Source: Magallana gigas
Lineage: Eukaryota
Direction: 5' to 3'
DNA length: 64,000 nucleotides
Assembly: GCF_963853765.1 (NCBI RefSeq)
Contig: NC_088853.1
Location: 16,306,001-16,370,000, forward strand
The stretch's first letter is position 1; each line of letters starts with the position of its first letter. The notes beneath the pieces are model-generated. The model made no database searches. It saw only the letters and a program-made list of their open reading frames with translations, and was not told the origin of the DNA. Below, piece after piece: positions 36,052 to 44,019 of the stretch. Position numbers and translations under genes: made by a program.

Positions 36052-37259
36052 TTAAATGAATAATAAACAGTTAGTCTGTCAATTTGGTCTTATTTCAGTT
36101 AAACATTTTCAGTACATCACTTCAAGAATTATAGCAGAAAGACAAACACAATGCTAGGCGTTAATCATCATATACAGTATAGACATTTTCCAGTACGGAG
36201 TAGTATTGTCGGTTTATTAAACTGGACAAGTAAAACATGAAAACAACACAGGAACTATTGCTCAAAGCCAAGCATAAGTTAAAGTATATCAGACCCTGTA
36301 CATTGAGTTATTACAAACAGTCCCATTAAATTCCCTGAAGCGGTAGGGAAGGTCAGACGGGTTAGAATTTTTATGTCTCAATCGAGTGCTCAGAAAGGTA
36401 TTGAATATGACGGTTTGTCAACTTAATTAATTACTGCATTAAATGCATCAAATTTTGTGCCTTTAATAGAATTTGAATGTATGGAATGACTGGTTCCAGG
36501 GTATTTACATAGAGGGAAGAATAGCATTCCGGTTTGAAGTCCAGCTGGTAGGGGACGACTTTGAAAACTTGTAATGCTTTTTGACGCCTTACCGGAATGT
36601 TATCCTTCCATCATTGGTGCGGAAGGCTAAAAAGGCCTTCTAAGTGTAATCTACCAAACCAATTGAGAGGACGGAATAATAAATCCGGAATAAGAAGGGT
36701 TTCAATCGAGCGCGCCCCCCTTAAACGATCCTTTAATGCTTTAAACATTTTCAGAAATATAGAATGTTAATTTGTTATTAAGAAAATCAATAATTTTGTA
36801 TTTAGAAAAAAACCAGTCATAACGGATTCCTAATACGCTTACTCTGACTCCTCGGTCAATGCAACGTTTTTCATTCATGAGCTTAACAATCTATAGGTTA
36901 TCTATTTGGTTAAACTGATGTTATGTGTTATGGCTTTGATCCACTTTGTTTTTATGAAAAAAGGGATACACAAGATTGAGATGCGTAGTAAATGGATAGG
37001 CGTTCAGTGACTGGCTTGAATAATAGTGATTTTGATTATATACTTTAAACAAAGCTGATTAGTCCGATTATGAAGCATATTTCGTATTTTATATGTATTT
37101 ATAAATGAATATTCTAATTGTTTCTTTGATTATTTTTTTTTTGTTTTTTTTTTTTTTTTGTAATGAATTTATTAATTTCATACAAGAACAGTTATATCAT
37201 AATGACAAAGCATGAAAGTTTTCAAAAAATGTTAAATGGCCTAAATTGAAAAAACTTGT

Positions 37260-37262
<3 letters not shown>

Positions 37263-37313
<51 letters not shown>
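37263..37313. repeat. (GA)n microsatellite in the LINE 3' UTR
   Basis: Direct reading. Confidence 0.95.
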
Positions 37314-37315
<2 letters not shown>

Positions 37316-37316
37316 A

Positions 37317-40300
37317 TTATGTAAATAAATGTTGCCATATTTCCCATCTGTTATTAAATTCATTCATTTTATTTTCCACACCTGCAGTGTATTTTATTGC
37401 CTTAATATATGATTCGATCTCATGTAGTACTCCAAGGACTGATAAGTTACTTTTAAAGCATCTGCTTCTGTATATGTATTGCTTAACTAGCATAAATATA
37501 ACATTGCTCTGTCTAATATTTTCTTTAGTTTTGTATTCTCCAAACATGAAAGTATCTTGATTCAGTTCAATATCTATATTCTTTATTTGACAAAAGTTTA
37601 TGAAGTTATTAAGAAGCTGCTGTACAGTTGGGCAATTCCACATTAGGTGGCAAATTGTTTCCTCTTCACTATGACATAGATTACATAATTTTGAATCAAC
37701 TTTCCCAATTTTAAACATAATACTATTTGTTGTTAAAATATTATGATTGATGCGATATTGTAGCCATTGTAACTTAGCACTATTGGTAGTAAAAAATGGG
37801 ATAGAATATATCTTTTTCCATTGTAAGTCAGTAATTTCAAAGATTTTCCCCCACTTTTCCTGTGCACCTGGCTTGACTTCTGATCTATTTAATACATCAT
37901 ACATAGCTTTTGATCCTTTTCTTGTTGTGACAAAAATCTGGATATTTATCGGAATAAAAGGTTTATCTAAACATACATCTCTGTATATATTACACTTTCT
38001 CATATCAGATATTATAGCCTGCTTGATTCCTAAAAAAGTTACATAGTTTGTTTTTATATTAAACTTCAATTTTAGTGTATCTAAAGATATAAAATTCCCC
38101 CGTTCATTCAGTAGGTCGTTGACATATATGATATTATTTTTATACCAAGATCTGTAAAAAACTGTTTCTTTCCCTATTTTAAATCTTTTATTATGCCACA
38201 AAGGCTGGCTAATATATTCTTTCCAATTACTAATTTGGTTTTTATCTTGAATGTCCTTGAACGCTATAAAAACATCTTTCCAAAAATCATTTTTAATATT
38301 CTCTTTTAGGCCAACTAAGTATTCAGTTCCTGTGCTTAATAAAAGTTCGATATCTACTATGTTTTGTAACAAGGTTTTCCACTTTGAATTGTTATTAAAA
38401 AGAATTCTTCTTATCCATGTAGATTTTAATCCTTTTATATAATTTTCTAAGTCAAGCATTTTCAGCCCTCCATGAGAATATTTTTGTGTAACAATCTTTC
38501 TTTTTACTTTATCAACATCAGAGTTCCATAGAAATCTAAAAATAATGCTATTTAGTTCTTTCGTTAGTATAGGTTGCGGGTTTGGTAAAGTTATAAATAA
38601 GTGGTTAAGTTGAGATATGATTAGAGATTTTATAAGAGTTATTCTTCCAATTGGTGTTAAGTTACGCTTTTTCCATTGTTCTATTATACTTTTTATTTTT
38701 ACCAGTTTTTTGTCATAATTCAATTTATTTATTCTTGTTAAGTCCACATCATAGTGAATGCCCAATAGTTTAAAGTTTGTTGTCCATTCGAAATTAATTT
38801 CTGTACAGATTTTGTCTTCTGAATATTTTTTACTTCCTATCCATACAATCTGGGTTTTTGCATTATTCATTTTAAGCCCTGACATGATATAAAACTTCTC
38901 CAACTCTTCCATTGTTGCATTTAATGACTTTTCTGATCCATCCAGAATTATAACTGTATCATCAGCATACTGTGATATTATATATTCATTATCGTTTATT
39001 TTTATACCTTTAATATCTTTGTTATGTTTTATATTTATTGACAATATTTCAGCACATAGCAAAAAAATGTATGGAGAAATAGGGTCTCCTTGTCTGCAGC
39101 CTCTTTCTAAATTAAAAAAATTAGATAAGATGCCTGCTTGAGTTACACATGACACAGACTTATTTTGAAAAGTTTTAACCCAATTTGAAATTGACGGGCC
39201 AAAATTGAAGTAGGATAGGACTTTATAAATGAATTTCCAAGACACCGAGTCAAAGGCTTTTTCAAAATCAATCATAGCTAGGACTCCAGGAATATTACAT
39301 ATTTCAGTGTAGTTCATTAAATCATATATTAATCTCGTATTTTCGCCAATATATCTGCCTGAAATGAAACCCGATTGGTCTGAACTTATTATTTTGTTTA
39401 AAGTGTGTTTAATCCTTCTAGCTATACATCCTGATCCAATTTTATAAACTGTATTAAGTAGAGTTATAGGTCTCCAATTTGCAATGTTAAATTTACTTTT
39501 ACCCTCTTTTGGTACACATGTTATTATCCCCTGTTTCTGTGTTGATGATAATTCTCCAATTTCATAACCCCAGTTTAAAGATCTTATAATGAAATATCCT
39601 AACTTGTTCCAAAACATTTTAAAAAATTCAGCTGTAAAGCCATCACTTCCAGGGCTTTTGTTATTTGACATGTTTTTTAATATTGTTAATGCTTCATCAT
39701 ATGTAATTTTTCCCTCTAATTTTTCACGTTCTGAGTCATTTAATTTCATAACATCTGTGAAAGTTATTCTATTCAAATCAAATTCCGCTGTATCTACATT
39801 TGTTTTTGCATTATATAAATTTTTATAGAAAATTGCTACTTCTTTTAAAATGTGTTCCTGTTTATTAATTTCTACATGTACATTGTTGTCCTGTTTTATA
39901 AGCTTAGGTATAATTTTATTTACATAATGTCTGTTTTCCAAATTTAAAAAGTAACTGGTAGGTTTTTCGCCTTCGCTTAGCCATTTCGCTCGTGATCTAA
40001 CTAAATTTCCCATTTGCTTATGCTTTCTTATGTTTTCTAGTTCTTGTTTCTTTTCATATATTATATCCATATTCATTTCATAGTCTTCCTCTAATGAGCC
40101 TATTTCTTCTATAAGTTTCTGTTCAGCAATTGATCTACTTTTTTTTAAATAGCTTGCAAATGAAATAGTTTTACCCCTGATTTCGATTAGCAGCGTTTCC
40201 AAAAATAGCTGGTCATTTATAAAAAATTGTATTTCAGGGTCTGGTAAATCTAAAATATTTTCCCTATTATATATAGGCAATGCATATTGTTTTTTAATTT

Positions 40301-41108
40301 CATCAATATGATTATTGATTGATTGTACATATTCAGGTATATTTAAAAGAGAGTTATTAAATTTCCATAGGCCTTTACCATGTTTGAATTCATTCAGTTT
40401 CAACAATATCATAATTGGTGAATGATCTGACCTATAGCTAGTTAATATGTCACATTTTTGAACTTGTGTTATCAATGAAGTTGATATCAGGAAAAAGTCT
40501 AGCCTTGCTTGTTTTAATGGATTAGATTTTCTCCAAGTATATCTTTCTATGTTTGGGTGAAATTCTCTATAAATATCTGCTAAATCAAAATAACTAATTA
40601 GCTCTAATAGTTTTCCTCTTGCTTTCGGGTTATTTACATGCAAATAATTAAAATAATCTTTGGATGTATCTATAACCATATTATAATCACCTACAATAAT
40701 TATTTCTTCATTATTTATTCTTGTTATTATGTCTGATAGTGTTTGATAAAAAGTGGGAGAATCTTCATTAGGTCCATATATGCATGCTAAAGTTAATCTC
40801 TTATTCTCAATTTTGATATCTAAAGCTAATAAATTCCCATTATCATCCTTCACACACTCATATATATTATATTCAAAATTACTGCTGAAAAGTATTGCAA
40901 TTCCTCTTGAATTAGATGCATAAGAGTTAAATACAACTTCAAAACCCCATTCGTTTCTGATATTGTTTTCAATTTCCTCTGTGAAATGAGTATCTATCAA
41001 ACAAAGAATGTTACAGTTTTGTTTTCTGTAATACTCGAAAACGTCTTTTCTTTTTTTATCGTCATTCAGTCCTTGACAGTTTACAGAAAGTATCTTAATG
41101 TCCGACAT
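37317..41108 (-). CDS. LINE ORF2p: APE endonuclease + reverse transcriptase + zf-RVT (1263 aa)
   Basis: SVNCQGLN, GDYN, RLDFFL, SDH; WRPITLLN.VYKI, DFEKAFD, RQGDPISP, QYADD; C-terminal CNLC..ETICHLMWNCP. No stops. Confidence 0.97.
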   Translation of the reverse strand: MSDIKILSVNCQGLNDDKKRKDVFEYYRKQNCNILCLIDTHFTEEIENNIRNEWGFEVVFNSYASNSRGIAILFSSNFEYNIYECVKDDNGNLLALDIKIENKRLTLACIYGPNEDSPTFYQTLSDIITRINNEEIIIVGDYNMVIDTSKDYFNYLHVNNPKARGKLLELISYFDLADIYREFHPNIERYTWRKSNPLKQARLDFFLISTSLITQVQKCDILTSYRSDHSPIMILLKLNEFKHGKGLWKFNNSLLNIPEYVQSINNHIDEIKKQYALPIYNRENILDLPDPEIQFFINDQLFLETLLIEIRGKTISFASYLKKSRSIAEQKLIEEIGSLEEDYEMNMDIIYEKKQELENIRKHKQMGNLVRSRAKWLSEGEKPTSYFLNLENRHYVNKIIPKLIKQDNNVHVEINKQEHILKEVAIFYKNLYNAKTNVDTAEFDLNRITFTDVMKLNDSEREKLEGKITYDEALTILKNMSNNKSPGSDGFTAEFFKMFWNKLGYFIIRSLNWGYEIGELSSTQKQGIITCVPKEGKSKFNIANWRPITLLNTVYKIGSGCIARRIKHTLNKIISSDQSGFISGRYIGENTRLIYDLMNYTEICNIPGVLAMIDFEKAFDSVSWKFIYKVLSYFNFGPSISNWVKTFQNKSVSCVTQAGILSNFFNLERGCRQGDPISPYIFLLCAEILSINIKHNKDIKGIKINDNEYIISQYADDTVIILDGSEKSLNATMEELEKFYIMSGLKMNNAKTQIVWIGSKKYSEDKICTEINFEWTTNFKLLGIHYDVDLTRINKLNYDKKLVKIKSIIEQWKKRNLTPIGRITLIKSLIISQLNHLFITLPNPQPILTKELNSIIFRFLWNSDVDKVKRKIVTQKYSHGGLKMLDLENYIKGLKSTWIRRILFNNNSKWKTLLQNIVDIELLLSTGTEYLVGLKENIKNDFWKDVFIAFKDIQDKNQISNWKEYISQPLWHNKRFKIGKETVFYRSWYKNNIIYVNDLLNERGNFISLDTLKLKFNIKTNYVTFLGIKQAIISDMRKCNIYRDVCLDKPFIPINIQIFVTTRKGSKAMYDVLNRSEVKPGAQEKWGKIFEITDLQWKKIYSIPFFTTNSAKLQWLQYRINHNILTTNSIMFKIGKVDSKLCNLCHSEEETICHLMWNCPTVQQLLNNFINFCQIKNIDIELNQDTFMFGEYKTKENIRQSNVIFMLVKQYIYRSRCFKSNLSVLGVLHEIESYIKAIKYTAGVENKMNEFNNRWEIWQHLFT

Positions 41109-41559
41109 GAGCCGATAGAAAGATTATTTTTAACTTACAATTAACATCGCAAACGTGGAAATTAATGAAGTAATTCAAACAAATAAAATTTTGGGTAAAC
41201 AGTAATGTCAAAGAGAGTGAAAGAAGAGAAAGTATGAAGAAGATAGAATACCTTTGTGTAGACATGCTCACTATAACTATGACACAAGGTAAACGTCAAC
41301 TTTTGCAATTTCAGTGTCCATAAACACAAACCGGATGTTTTATATGTGCAGTTAAAAAAAGAATGAAATAGTTGAACATAATAAATCCGGAAAAAAAAAT
41401 TAGGTGGAGTAACTGTACATTTGAAAGTTGGTATAATGTTCACACGTGTAAATAAATACATTGCACTTAACATTGTGCGAGAAAATTATGGAGTTTTTTT
41501 TTTAGATCCGATATAAATATTCGCAAGGATTCGCAATAGGTTTCGCAAGGAAACCTATT

Positions 41560-42801
41560 TTATAGGTTGTCCAGTAAGTTCGCAACATCGCACACATGTT
41601 CCTCCATAATATGGAATCTCTCGGGACCCAGTCGCGTGTGACCACTCCGCCGTGTAATGACCACCGCTATATTCTGCATTTGATTAGTTTTTATATAGTG
41701 TAGTAAACGCCTGCCCGCTCCATGCTCCCCATCGTCATAGTATCCTTCTTGGATCCTGCTTGAGGAGTCCGTGAAACGATATACAAGAATTCTGTGATCA
41801 GCTGATGCTGAAAATGGGTCCAAATTTACTTTTTGGTAAAGGTTTTGGACATCGCTAGATGATGATACTCTTGCTCCGCTTGCAAATATTTCCGACCCTT
41901 TTTTTTGAGTCGGGTCCGTTGAAACGGAATCTACTAGTTCCACATCTTGCGTCGCAATTTGTAATACATCAGAAGATTCCAGTTTTGGAATTGGTTCCTG
42001 GTACTTTTCGCCGTTTGGTAATACGATTCGGCCCCTCTCGACCTTTGTTCTGATATTCTGCGATCTTAACATATCTGAGATGGCGTAAAGGCGTTTTTTT
42101 TCCTCCACCATAACTGTGGGTTCCTGTGTTGTTATGAAAAAAGGGAGGGTTACCTTTGCCATTTTTTTAGATTTTTGAGCTTGTAGTAGCTCATCTTTCA
42201 TCTTTCGATCTACTAATTTCCCTGTAATTGACACTGGTTTGGAATTAACAACACCTTTTACGCTGTTTCTGTGGATTCTCACGAATTGGATATCGACTCC
42301 TAATGTGTCTTTAATTGTTTCGGGGATGATCTGCATTAAATTTTCGCCTTGTTTGTACGGAAAGTTGTGAATAAGAATGTTGTGTCTCATGGACCTTGCC
42401 CTCAAATCTGTTACCTCAGACTTCACATTTTCCATTTTTCTATCGAATTTGATCAGCATAGCCCTCATGAGATCGAGCTCCCTCCGCAATTGTGCGTTTT
42501 CTGCGCGGACAATATGAATTTCGTCGTAATTACTCTCTGCTTGTTCTCCAATATAATTGACAGTTTTTGATATCCCCATATCTGGATCTTCTAAAGTTTT
42601 TTTAATGGCCTGAATTTCACTGTATATCGGCTCATATCTCGAAAGTTTTTTACTTAAATCTTTTACTGTCTTTTGTAAGGATTGAAAATCCTTTAAAGGT
42701 ACCGTTACCTGTTTGTTTTCGTCAGCTGGCTTCGGTGAGTTCTCCTCCCCGGGCTTTTTGTTGAACATTTTTACAGGCCTTTGTTGTTTACCTGTTGACA
42801 T
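41560..42801 (-). CDS. LINE ORF1p: coiled coil + L1-type RRM/CTD + C-terminal IMPACT/UPF0029-like domain
   Basis: First ATG at 42801 (the track starts at GTG 42807). DLRARSMRHNILIHNFP and IQFVRIHR are L1 ORF1 motifs. aa ~301-410 contain ADHRILVYRF, DDGEHGAGRRLL, NIAVVITR and LGPERF. Confidence 0.9.
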   Translation of the reverse strand: MSTGKQQRPVKMFNKKPGEENSPKPADENKQVTVPLKDFQSLQKTVKDLSKKLSRYEPIYSEIQAIKKTLEDPDMGISKTVNYIGEQAESNYDEIHIVRAENAQLRRELDLMRAMLIKFDRKMENVKSEVTDLRARSMRHNILIHNFPYKQGENLMQIIPETIKDTLGVDIQFVRIHRNSVKGVVNSKPVSITGKLVDRKMKDELLQAQKSKKMAKVTLPFFITTQEPTVMVEEKKRLYAISDMLRSQNIRTKVERGRIVLPNGEKYQEPIPKLESSDVLQIATQDVELVDSVSTDPTQKKGSEIFASGARVSSSSDVQNLYQKVNLDPFSASADHRILVYRFTDSSSRIQEGYYDDGEHGAGRRLLHYIKTNQMQNIAVVITRRSGHTRLGPERFHIMEEHVCDVANLLDNL

Positions 42802-44019
42802 TTTCACTTAAATCCTTTGGTTTTTTTGCACTGAAAATTTTGCAGAATGCTCTACAAATGTATATTAACAGACGGGTATAAATACAATTTCACTAATCCC
42901 ACCGTAATTCACACTTTTCACCGAAATTGCCGGAGCCGAAATTTTTACCTGGCCATTGTTAGCACGTCACGTGACCTCTTTGTTTCTTTCTTTGATTATA
43001 AGAACATTGTTCTTAAGTTAAAAACGAGAAACAATCAAAACAAAACTCTCCGAAATTAAGTCTGAATATTTAACAGACAAGATCGCCTGACTTCCGATTT
43101 CACGATAAGACATGGGAACTGGGGTTAGTTACATCTGTATCATGGATGATTATCAAACTATTGGGTGTTTATTTCAAGAGATATATGTTAATATTAATAA
43201 CGGAAGTAAGCATTCTGCTTTTTAATAAGTGATTACATTGCATTTAAACCTATTAAATACGGTATATTGAGAACTGATGTCGTATTGTGAAAAATGACAA
43301 AGAAGGTAAATTAGACAATATGACGAATACGGCAGTTATAGATTAGACGTTATTTCTGTAATATTTTAATCATCATCGTCAACTGCTGGGGATTTTTATG
43401 GTAGAGGGAGACCTTGATCTGTCATCAGATCTAGATCTACAAGTGGACTCGGACGCGGACGGGGTAGACAGAAACGAAGAGATGTCAGATTTCACTGTCC
43501 TAAACAGACACAAAACAGAGAAGAGGTAGCAAAGGCAAATTAATGTATAAATAGAAGTTATATAAGACATTTTTTACGTCTAAAAAAAACTAAGTTTCAC
43601 GCGTACATGGAAGAATTGAAGTTTAAAATGTTTAATATTGTTTTATTCAATTAATTTATCATAGGTACTAGAACACATGTTATATGTTTTGGTTTTATAT
43701 ATTTAAACCTGTAGCCATTGGCTACTATTTATAGCGTATAACCTGTAGAACAGGTATTCAAGTTAAGCACGATTTTCACTCATTCGAAGGCTTTTCTTTG
43801 CTGCATTTGCACAGTCCCCACCCACCCACCCACTTATTTAGTGACATTTAAAAATCAAGGACTGTGCACTATGTAAAATGTTTTATTTCAGAAAGAAGTT
43901 TGAAGAATCTATATGTATTTGTACGTGTAAATAAATGCAGCAAAATAAGCGCTTCCTTCGCTAATCATGTGTTTTGTTATTATTGTAAATAATTTATGTT
44001 CGGTTGAGTGGAACGAATA

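Follow-up and report, generated by a model that had tools for sequence, protein, structure and literature searches.

The stretch of DNA analysed here, 64,000 nucleotides of the genome of the oyster Magallana gigas (assembly GCF_963853765.1, contig NC_088853.1, positions 16,306,001 to 16,370,000 of the forward strand; hereafter the window, in whose numbering positions are given), carries on its reverse strand a complete L1-like long interspersed nuclear element (LINE), the first open reading frame (ORF1) of which encodes a protein, ORF1p, that terminates in a UPF0029 domain, the so-called ancient domain of eukaryotic IMPACT and Yih1 and of bacterial YigZ. We consider this element to be an active-looking member of a clade of bivalve L1-like LINEs that combine a type II ORF1p, consisting of a coiled coil, an RNA recognition motif (RRM) and a small C-terminal domain (CTD), with UPF0029 as a fourth, C-terminal module, and we explain this combination by a probable capture of the domain, with a role in translation as its more tentative part; to this reading as a whole we give a probability of roughly 0.8.

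A UPF0029 domain at the end of an L1-type ORF1p

By sequence and by fold alike, and far beyond chance, the terminal domain of ORF1p is UPF0029. The protein matches PF01205 (UPF0029/Impact_N) with an E-value of 6.7e-16 and 58.7 bits, the gathering score being 27; the 115-aa C-terminal piece alone does so with an E-value of 4.1e-17, and a phmmer search of PDB sequences retrieves 'Protein IMPACT homolog' (6bqi, yeast Yih1) with an E-value of 3e-10. Residues are counted here from the ATG at 42801, which gives a protein of 413 aa; the intact frame occupies 41560-42807 on the reverse strand and yields 415 aa from a GTG, residues 303-403 of the Pfam match in that longer frame being residues 301-401 in our count. 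The AlphaFold2 model of ORF1p, computed from a 17-sequence ORF1p alignment (A1) that also supplied the family profile, has a mean predicted local distance difference test score (pLDDT) of 84.6. It consists of a coiled coil (residues 36-137), a beta-alpha-beta-beta-alpha-beta unit (141-225), a small second domain extending to ~296 and an alpha/beta domain (303-412), the linker between the CTD and UPF0029 being short and predicted with lower confidence (pLDDT 74 at residues 281-290). In VIA-align comparisons, residues 290-413 align with TT1547 (2cve) with Z 16.2 and a root mean square deviation (rmsd) of 2.2 A over 114 residues and with YigZ (1vi7) with Z 15.8 (for the two structures together, 114-119 residues and 2.2-2.4 A), and residues 286-413 align with Yih1 (6bqi) with Z 10.7. 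A DUF1949-type second domain is absent according to both Pfam and the model, the protein stopping ~12 residues past the Pfam envelope. An earlier note on this DNA, made from its letters alone, had placed an IMPACT/YigZ-like domain at 41578-41907, had read in it the four motifs of the ancient domain in order and had remarked on the absence of the RWD domain of IMPACT. Indeed, PF01205 matches at 41599-41901 and the Foldseek and VIA-align matches are strong, the motifs align in that order in the phmmer match to 6bqi, and Pfam detects no RWD domain (PF05773) in ORF1p.

The remainder of the protein is, as the same note had supposed, that of a normal L1-type ORF1p. Pfam, including Transposase_22, does not recognise this part in the window ORF1p or in the 17 members of A1, and a single-sequence phmmer search with the N-terminal part returned nothing but coiled-coil noise; the kinship had to be traced through the family profile and the structure. 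By sequence, the A1 profile reaches human L1 ORF1p (2ldy, comprising RRM and CTD, E-value 2.4e-5; 2yko, E-value 5.8e-5). By structure, the human L1 ORF1p trimer heads the Foldseek matches of the ORF1p model (E-value 3.4e-7), followed by Yih1 (4e-6), TT1547 and YigZ, and VIA-align matches residues 137-226 to the RRM, or central domain, of human L1 ORF1p (2w7a, Z 11.0) and residues 94-270 to the human trimer (2ykp, Z 10.7). ORF1 proteins are reportedly classed by Khazina and Weichenrieder into types I-V, and by the modelled order of coiled coil, RRM and CTD the oyster protein belongs to type II.

Residues 81-413 are, moreover, predicted to form a homotrimer with a score of 0.78, compared with 0.00 for the best control, a value that may reflect memory of the solved human L1 ORF1p trimer; in the calibration of this score, which used two copies and not three, 21 of 30 proteins solved as one-chain pairs, but none of 23 solved single chains, attained the mark. 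The runs share at least 94% of contacts, the partner pLDDT is at least 85, and the predicted interface follows the heptad positions of residues 81-137. Within the predicted trimer, residues 327-335 of UPF0029 contact residues 108-123 of the coiled coil of the neighbouring chain with low expected error, and such a contact would hold the three domains around the stalk.

The target-site duplication, the poly(A) tail, the AATAAA signal, the identical empty site, the two intact frames and the match of ORF2 to its human counterpart (Table 1) together identify the element as a complete, recently inserted L1-like LINE; the earlier note had called it intact, and so it is, with a 413-aa ORF1 and a 1263-aa ORF2 that are both uninterrupted. 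ORF2 matches Exo_endo_phos (PF03372, E-value 3.8e-8) and RVT_1 (PF00078, E-value 1.3e-33), and resembles human L1 ORF2p with an E-value of 5.5e-87 over residues 2-894; the zf-RVT match (27.0 bits, E-value 7.2e-6) falls slightly below the cut-off of 27.5, and the residues that it matches, 1103-1164, include a stretch rich in Cys and His. An Rfam search of the element detected no RNA family. The genome searches covered the 564-Mb assembly, in which all matches fall on ten large chromosome-scale contigs (C1-C10). At the DNA level, such a search located the empty site (L031) ~70 kb away, with both flanks of the element joined at 100% identity. Further copies, 94-99% identical, have various 5' truncation points and one common 3' end, and a second copy, 99% identical and cut within ORF1, possesses an intact ORF2. 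The insertion flanks recur nearby on the chromosome, in the empty copy at 100% and at C1:16451000-16452640 and C1:16491300-16492830 at 84-97%, a pattern suggestive either of a local segmental duplication or of the other haplotype having been assembled in duplicate.

Expression was assessed in raw poly(A) RNA-seq reads, of which a sample of roughly 1 in 100 was compared with the element. One run contains 302 sampled reads that are at least 97% identical to the element and cover the whole of it, namely ORF1, UPF0029 and ORF2; the first mates over ORF1 all lie on the plus strand, as expected for sense RNA of the LINE provided that the library was made by the usual stranded convention. Four poly(A) reads with three start points (run X21) join 37562 to 41034 and skip 3471 nt, nearly all of ORF2; because the ends are not canonical splice sites, this join probably reflects an internally deleted copy and not splicing.

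Table 1. Coordinates of the element, its parts and the comparator loci (window positions unless a contig is named; G000 denotes the oyster genome)
Feature	Position	Strand	Basis
ORF1, 413 aa + stop: coiled coil, RRM, CTD, UPF0029	41560..42801	-	ORF, Pfam, AlphaFold2, structural alignment
UPF0029 / IMPACT ancient domain, Pfam envelope aa 301-401	41599..41901	-	PF01205 E 6.7e-16; structurally extends to the C-terminus at 41563
CTD of ORF1p, aa 227-296	41914..42123	-	aa 94-270 vs 2ykp Z 10.7; A1 profile vs 2ldy E 2.4e-5
RRM of ORF1p, aa 138-226	42124..42390	-	VIA-align vs 2w7a Z 11.0, rmsd 2.5 A, 87 residues aligned
Coiled coil of ORF1p, aa 36-137	42391..42696	-	AlphaFold2 helices 36-71, 77-137
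ORF2, 1263 aa: APE endonuclease and reverse transcriptase, with a putative zinc-binding region at the C-terminus	37317..41108	-	Pfam; human L1 ORF2p match
Inter-ORF spacer, 451 nt, T-rich	41109..41559	-	no conservation between families
Full-length L1-like LINE, 5.85 kb	37134..42986	-	boundaries from 100%-identical empty paralogous site G000:C1:16276794-16278928
Target-site duplication, 5' copy, 13 bp, ATAATCAAAGAAA	42987..42999	-	read in filled and empty sites
Target-site duplication, 3' copy, 13 bp	37121..37133	-	read in filled and empty sites
5' untranslated region, ~185 nt	42802..42986	-	between 5' junction and ORF1 ATG; covered by sense poly(A) RNA-seq reads
(CT)n microsatellite, start of 3' untranslated region just past the ORF2 stop	37263..37314	-	direct reading
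AATAAA signal (37168-37173) and 26-nt poly(A) tail (37134-37159)	37134..37173	-	direct reading
ORF2s of the domain-less sister group	G000 C1:41091592, C3:2081458, C4:51781450, C4:16207174		ORF1s upstream

Distribution, conservation and origin of the fused domain

The fusion is common to several families of pteriomorph bivalves and to LINE families whose ORF1p identity goes down to ~21-25%. In the oyster genome, the ORF1p query has 103 matching places, and intact ORF1-UPF0029 frames spanning the whole query occur at 59, 51, 38 and ~25% identity to the window ORF1p; the 86 genome matches to PF01205 include at least 24 intact ORF1-UPF0029 frames of 379-449 aa, from families 21-59% identical. At every locus with downstream DNA examined, these ORF1s are followed by an ORF2 with APE endonuclease and reverse transcriptase domains (APE-RT) or by its start, and full-length pairs elsewhere in the genome encode ORF1 and ORF2 proteins of 429 and 1274, 424 and 1268, and 417 and 1269 aa. 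All 17 members of A1 match PF01205, the best with an E-value of 1.9e-22. The named homologues come from Ostrea edulis, Saccostrea, Crassostrea virginica, C. angulata/gigas, Pinctada and Tegillarca. An exhaustive profile search at E<=1e-30 gathered 672 clusters (50% identity), and the best 150 of the 672 are mostly full-length fused proteins; two distant members, one from a metagenome and the other from an SRA assembly, both have an APE-RT ORF2 downstream. As to the taxonomy of the distant members, Crassostrea virginica is the only source named among 20 clusters looked up, and Mollusca is the commonest assignment among the Atlas clusters. In the clusters of the AlphaFold Database, both the ORF1 core and the domain are matched only by K1QFM4 and K1PVB6 ('IMPACT-like protein'), and the match is confined to the ORF1 core in A0A6J8EPR8 and A0A8B6FQ47. 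A one-off fusion, a possibility that the earlier note had raised against itself, is ruled out, since many diverged LINE families of the oyster genome have the domain, as do other bivalves; the position 5' of APE-RT ORFs, for which the note had suggested a test among 'IMPACT-like' mollusc proteins, is found at the examined loci, those of the two distant members included. A further entry of the same database, K1R5Z8 ('Putative gamma-glutamyltransferase ywrD'), matches residues 224-389 of ORF1p with its residues 19-188 and is probably a chimeric gene model that took in part of a LINE ORF1.

In NCBI and UniProt, the homologues are mostly named 'uncharacterized', or else 'protein IMPACT homolog' or 'IMPACT-like protein', and these latter names would be apt if the frames were host genes, whether IMPACT paralogues or domesticated ORF1 fusions, and not transposon proteins. 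We consider this very improbable, given that the window copy resides within an element marked by its target-site duplication, poly(A) tail and empty site, that the frames are intronless, multi-copy and succeeded by an APE-RT ORF2 or its start wherever examined, and that the true IMPACT gene, with RWD and introns, is found at another locus. This is the one spliced IMPACT gene among the PF01205 matches of the host genome, with RWD exons and an ancient domain that is distributed over three exons and detected as two short PF01205 matches on C3. Single domesticated copies may occur among the ORF1-UPF0029 frames.

Judging from the alignments, UPF0029 is the best conserved part of ORF1p: it holds 10 of the 16 invariant columns of A1, and its mean pairwise identity across eleven families is 0.44, compared with 0.34 for the coiled coil, 0.36 for the RRM and 0.35 for the CTD. 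Residues that are invariant in RWD-containing IMPACT proteins (F; A.H; DDGE; R; G..RF) persist in 83-98% of 127 diverse LINE representatives and are invariant or nearly so in A1. In the between-family NG86 analysis, the synonymous divergence (dS) was without an estimate in 38 of 40 family-pair/domain comparisons and amounted to 2.5 and 3.0 in the other two; the blanks are read as saturation, and the nonsynonymous divergence (dN) is 0.18-0.61 for UPF0029 and 0.18-0.73 over all four regions. Because so few comparisons gave a dS, there is no numerical omega, and pairs within families are unsuited for dN/dS, being too close and mixed with post-insertion decay. Since the domain is the best conserved part of the protein and its signature residues are kept across diverged families, it would not be passenger sequence. 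The notion of a functionless, neutral passenger or a one-off read-through fusion in the window copy, which has no backing other than the ability of LINEs in general to transduce and acquire sequences, is hardly credible in view of this conservation, of the apparent saturation of dS at such values of dN and of the recurrence of the domain in widely diverged LINE families and several bivalve families. More probably, the domain became necessary for the propagation of the lineage.

With regard to its origin, the domain is closer to eukaryotic than to bacterial relatives: the family profile retrieves Yih1 with an E-value of 7.6e-23, Thermus TTHA1053 with 1.7e-4 and Escherichia coli YigZ with 0.074. 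Identity to RWD-containing IMPACT proteins reaches 46% in one lineage (L036), the maximum in the set, and the LINE domains of five families compared are 30-39% identical to the host's own IMPACT domain. In a domain tree of 145 rows and 113 columns, the 127 LINE sequences are parted from 18 IMPACT-type sequences by a branch with a support of 99 in the Shimodaira-Hasegawa-like approximate likelihood ratio test (SH-aLRT), and keeping the RWD-IMPACT set together is not rejected by the approximately unbiased (AU) test (p 0.54). Three proteins, P0122, P0260 and P0263, fell inside the IMPACT clade, were rejected as LINE ORF1s and were taken out of the LINE set; one of the three has tandem UPF0029, in another the N-terminus resembles RWD on visual inspection, and the remaining one is a longer protein other than ORF1. 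P0122 (569 aa) displays three tandem UPF0029 domains after a repetitive acidic N-terminus and groups with IMPACT-type and not with LINE domains.

A sister group of L1-like LINEs (L053, L058, L060 and L061), whose ORF2s are 43-45% identical to that of the window, has intact ORF1s of 344-352 aa without UPF0029 and is a useful natural comparator; its ORF1s end in a conserved tail, W(Y/F)(Y/F)NGK(I/V)F(A/G)LD...(H/R)(K/R)FD(I/V)(L/F)D. In a tree of the ORF1 core from which UPF0029 was left out, all domain-bearing lineages are on one side and the domain-less L1-like ORF1s on the other, with a support of 81/85. The domain-less group also includes an inverted duplicate pair, at G000:C4:13570288-13574073 (-) and C4:13576741-13580526 (+), in which two intact ORF2s with equal query scores are arranged head to head across 2.7 kb.

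Because the profile scores, the domain tree and the ORF1-core tree fit it together, we favor a single old capture of an intronless eukaryotic IMPACT-type domain as the source of the LINE domains. Presumably, one ancestral LINE took up the intronless coding sequence of the ancient domain, without RWD, the likely route being from a processed mRNA during reverse transcription. The earlier note had spoken of a captured host domain; in the sense of a eukaryotic IMPACT-type source, the capture is supported by the kinship with eukaryotic IMPACT over YigZ, by the single group that the LINE domains form and by their lack of introns as against the three exons of the host domain.

Possible functions of the domain

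Yih1 and IMPACT are located on ribosomes (PMC11088878, PMC7140605, PMC4503747), and their inhibition of GCN2 works through RWD (PMC7140605, PMC4503747, PMC11088878); the function and the binding partners of the ancient domain are not known (PMC7140605, PMC4503747). Because the LINE ORF1p has no RWD, it cannot act via GCN1 in the manner of IMPACT. We infer that the domain has a role in translation or in the ribonucleoprotein (RNP) of the element; the earlier note had considered RNA handling, ribosome association and interference with translational control as possible roles. As to the mechanism, we propose, at clearly less than even odds, that the trimer docks its ancient domains on the translation machinery and thereby favors cis-loading and/or the translation of ORF2. 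The predicted ORF1p trimer would display three ancient domains, which would employ a conserved site, as in IMPACT/YigZ, to bind a universally conserved translation partner, either the ribosome or an associated RNA or factor. Such docking could retain nascent ORF1p at the mRNA from which it is being translated (cis-loading), could help ribosomes to get to ORF2 across the 0.4-1 kb spacer, or could do both. The inter-ORF spacers of this LINE clade are unusually long, 387-982 nt in all nine families (that of the window and L005, L007, L010, L013, L016, L032, L036 and L038), with 33-46% T; comparison between the families revealed no common sequence or peptide conservation in them.

Alternatively, the domain might work on nucleic acid within the RNP, as an RNA- or nucleotide-binding module or as an unrecognised catalytic module built around the DDGE/His/Arg cluster, in packaging, chaperoning or priming. 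The conserved residues, which are kept in the LINEs, do resemble those of an active site or a ligand site. ORF1p is a chaperone that binds RNA, and in it the domain follows the CTD after the short, lower-confidence linker; in addition, the median isoelectric point of the LINE domains is slightly higher than that of IMPACT domains (8.9 vs 8.0, p 0.02). This charge difference is, however, small and weak, and no nucleic-acid activity is described for any UPF0029 protein in PMC7140605 and PMC4503747, so that we deem this alternative possible but doubtful.

An ancient domain without RWD could also interfere with the host, by competing for the partner of IMPACT and so shifting GCN2 and integrated-stress-response signalling where the LINE is expressed. 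The origin of the domain in the eukaryotic IMPACT lineage, the absence of RWD and the presence of a single spliced IMPACT gene in the host would all be in keeping with this idea, which is nonetheless unlikely: a decoy would be expected to track its target, whereas the LINE domains, at the identities to the host domain given above, form a separate old clade, and the inhibitory activity of IMPACT requires RWD (PMC7140605).

Several observations weigh against our reading of an active-looking LINE clade with a captured, translation-linked module. In Yih1, the ribosome-binding determinant maps to a region that overlaps the linker and not clearly to the ancient domain (PMC4503747). The support that the ORF1-core tree gives to a single capture is moderate (81/85). 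In A1, the window copy breaks the family motif at one position, with ITRRSG instead of TRW.G. Furthermore, several positions differ from the window copy in all RNA reads (e.g., 42384 and 42423), and five of the reads run from the 5' end of the element (42978) into a flank unlike that of the window. Given these fixed differences and the different 5' flank, transcription can be attributed to the family and not to the window locus; the transcribed copy in that animal may be another full-length locus or allele, which suggests insertion polymorphism.

Relation to known systems and implications

The parallels with mammalian L1 extend from the order, the fold and the sequence profile of coiled coil, RRM and CTD (2ykp/2yko, 2w7a, 2ldy) to the coiled-coil homotrimer, in the oyster protein a predicted one, and to the position of ORF1 5' of an L1-like APE-RT ORF2 in a polyadenylated element with a target-site duplication. 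Unlike mammalian L1 ORF1p, the oyster protein adds the ~115-aa UPF0029 domain at its C-terminus and is missed by Transposase_22; moreover, the two reading frames, which in human L1 are separated by a spacer of tens of bases, are 0.4-1 kb apart in the oyster clade. With IMPACT/Yih1 (6bqi), ORF1p shares a homologous ancient domain and the same signature residues. The RWD domain that is found in the host IMPACT gene and in genuine IMPACT proteins is missing from it, as is an IMPACT-type linker, and the LINE domain differs further in being intronless, multi-copy, located at the end of a transposon protein and part of a separate clade. In the case of YigZ and TT1547 (1vi7, 2cve), the likeness is in the fold of the N-terminal domain (Z 15.8 and 16.2, rmsd 2.2-2.4 A), whereas the sequence kinship is far weaker (0.074 and 1.7e-4) and the LINE ORF1p has no DUF1949. 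ORF1 proteins are modular, for instance in the Jockey superfamily, and esterase, PHD and zinc-knuckle domains are among the host-like modules that they have acquired; the oyster ORF1p follows the same modular principle but differs from these LINE ORF1s with accessory domains in carrying UPF0029/Impact_N. The architecture is that of a type II ORF1p with a fourth, captured domain. A search of the full-text literature for UPF0029, PF01205 or 'Impact N-terminal' together with LINE/ORF1 terms found no paper, and wider searches brought up none of relevance, in agreement with the statement of the earlier note that it knew of no description of such an ORF1; Repbase and Dfam lay outside this search. 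The sequences themselves are already public as IMPACT homologues, and what is new is their recognition as LINE ORF1p.

For transposon biology, these findings bear on the least understood part of LINEs, the ORF1 proteins, whose known architectures are widened by a strongly conserved fourth module. A practical consequence concerns annotation: dozens of gene models of oysters that bear the name 'protein IMPACT homolog' or 'IMPACT-like' represent LINE ORF1s and do not belong in a count of IMPACT paralogues. For the biology of IMPACT and YigZ, an independent, selected use of the ancient domain without RWD, in an RNA-binding trimer that would have to work on its own mRNA at the ribosome, restricts the range of plausible functions, and the LINE copies supply many natural sequence variants of the domain. 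We further entertain, as a speculation, the idea that UPF0029 has a general translation- or RNA-linked activity which the LINE clade has co-opted for RNP cis-loading or for translation of the second ORF. If this were true, ORF1p of the bivalve LINEs would for the first time allow the function of the domain to be read via a simple phenotype, such as retrotransposition or RNP assembly, and it would expose the function of a domain that is conserved from bacteria to humans and has been unassigned for more than two decades.

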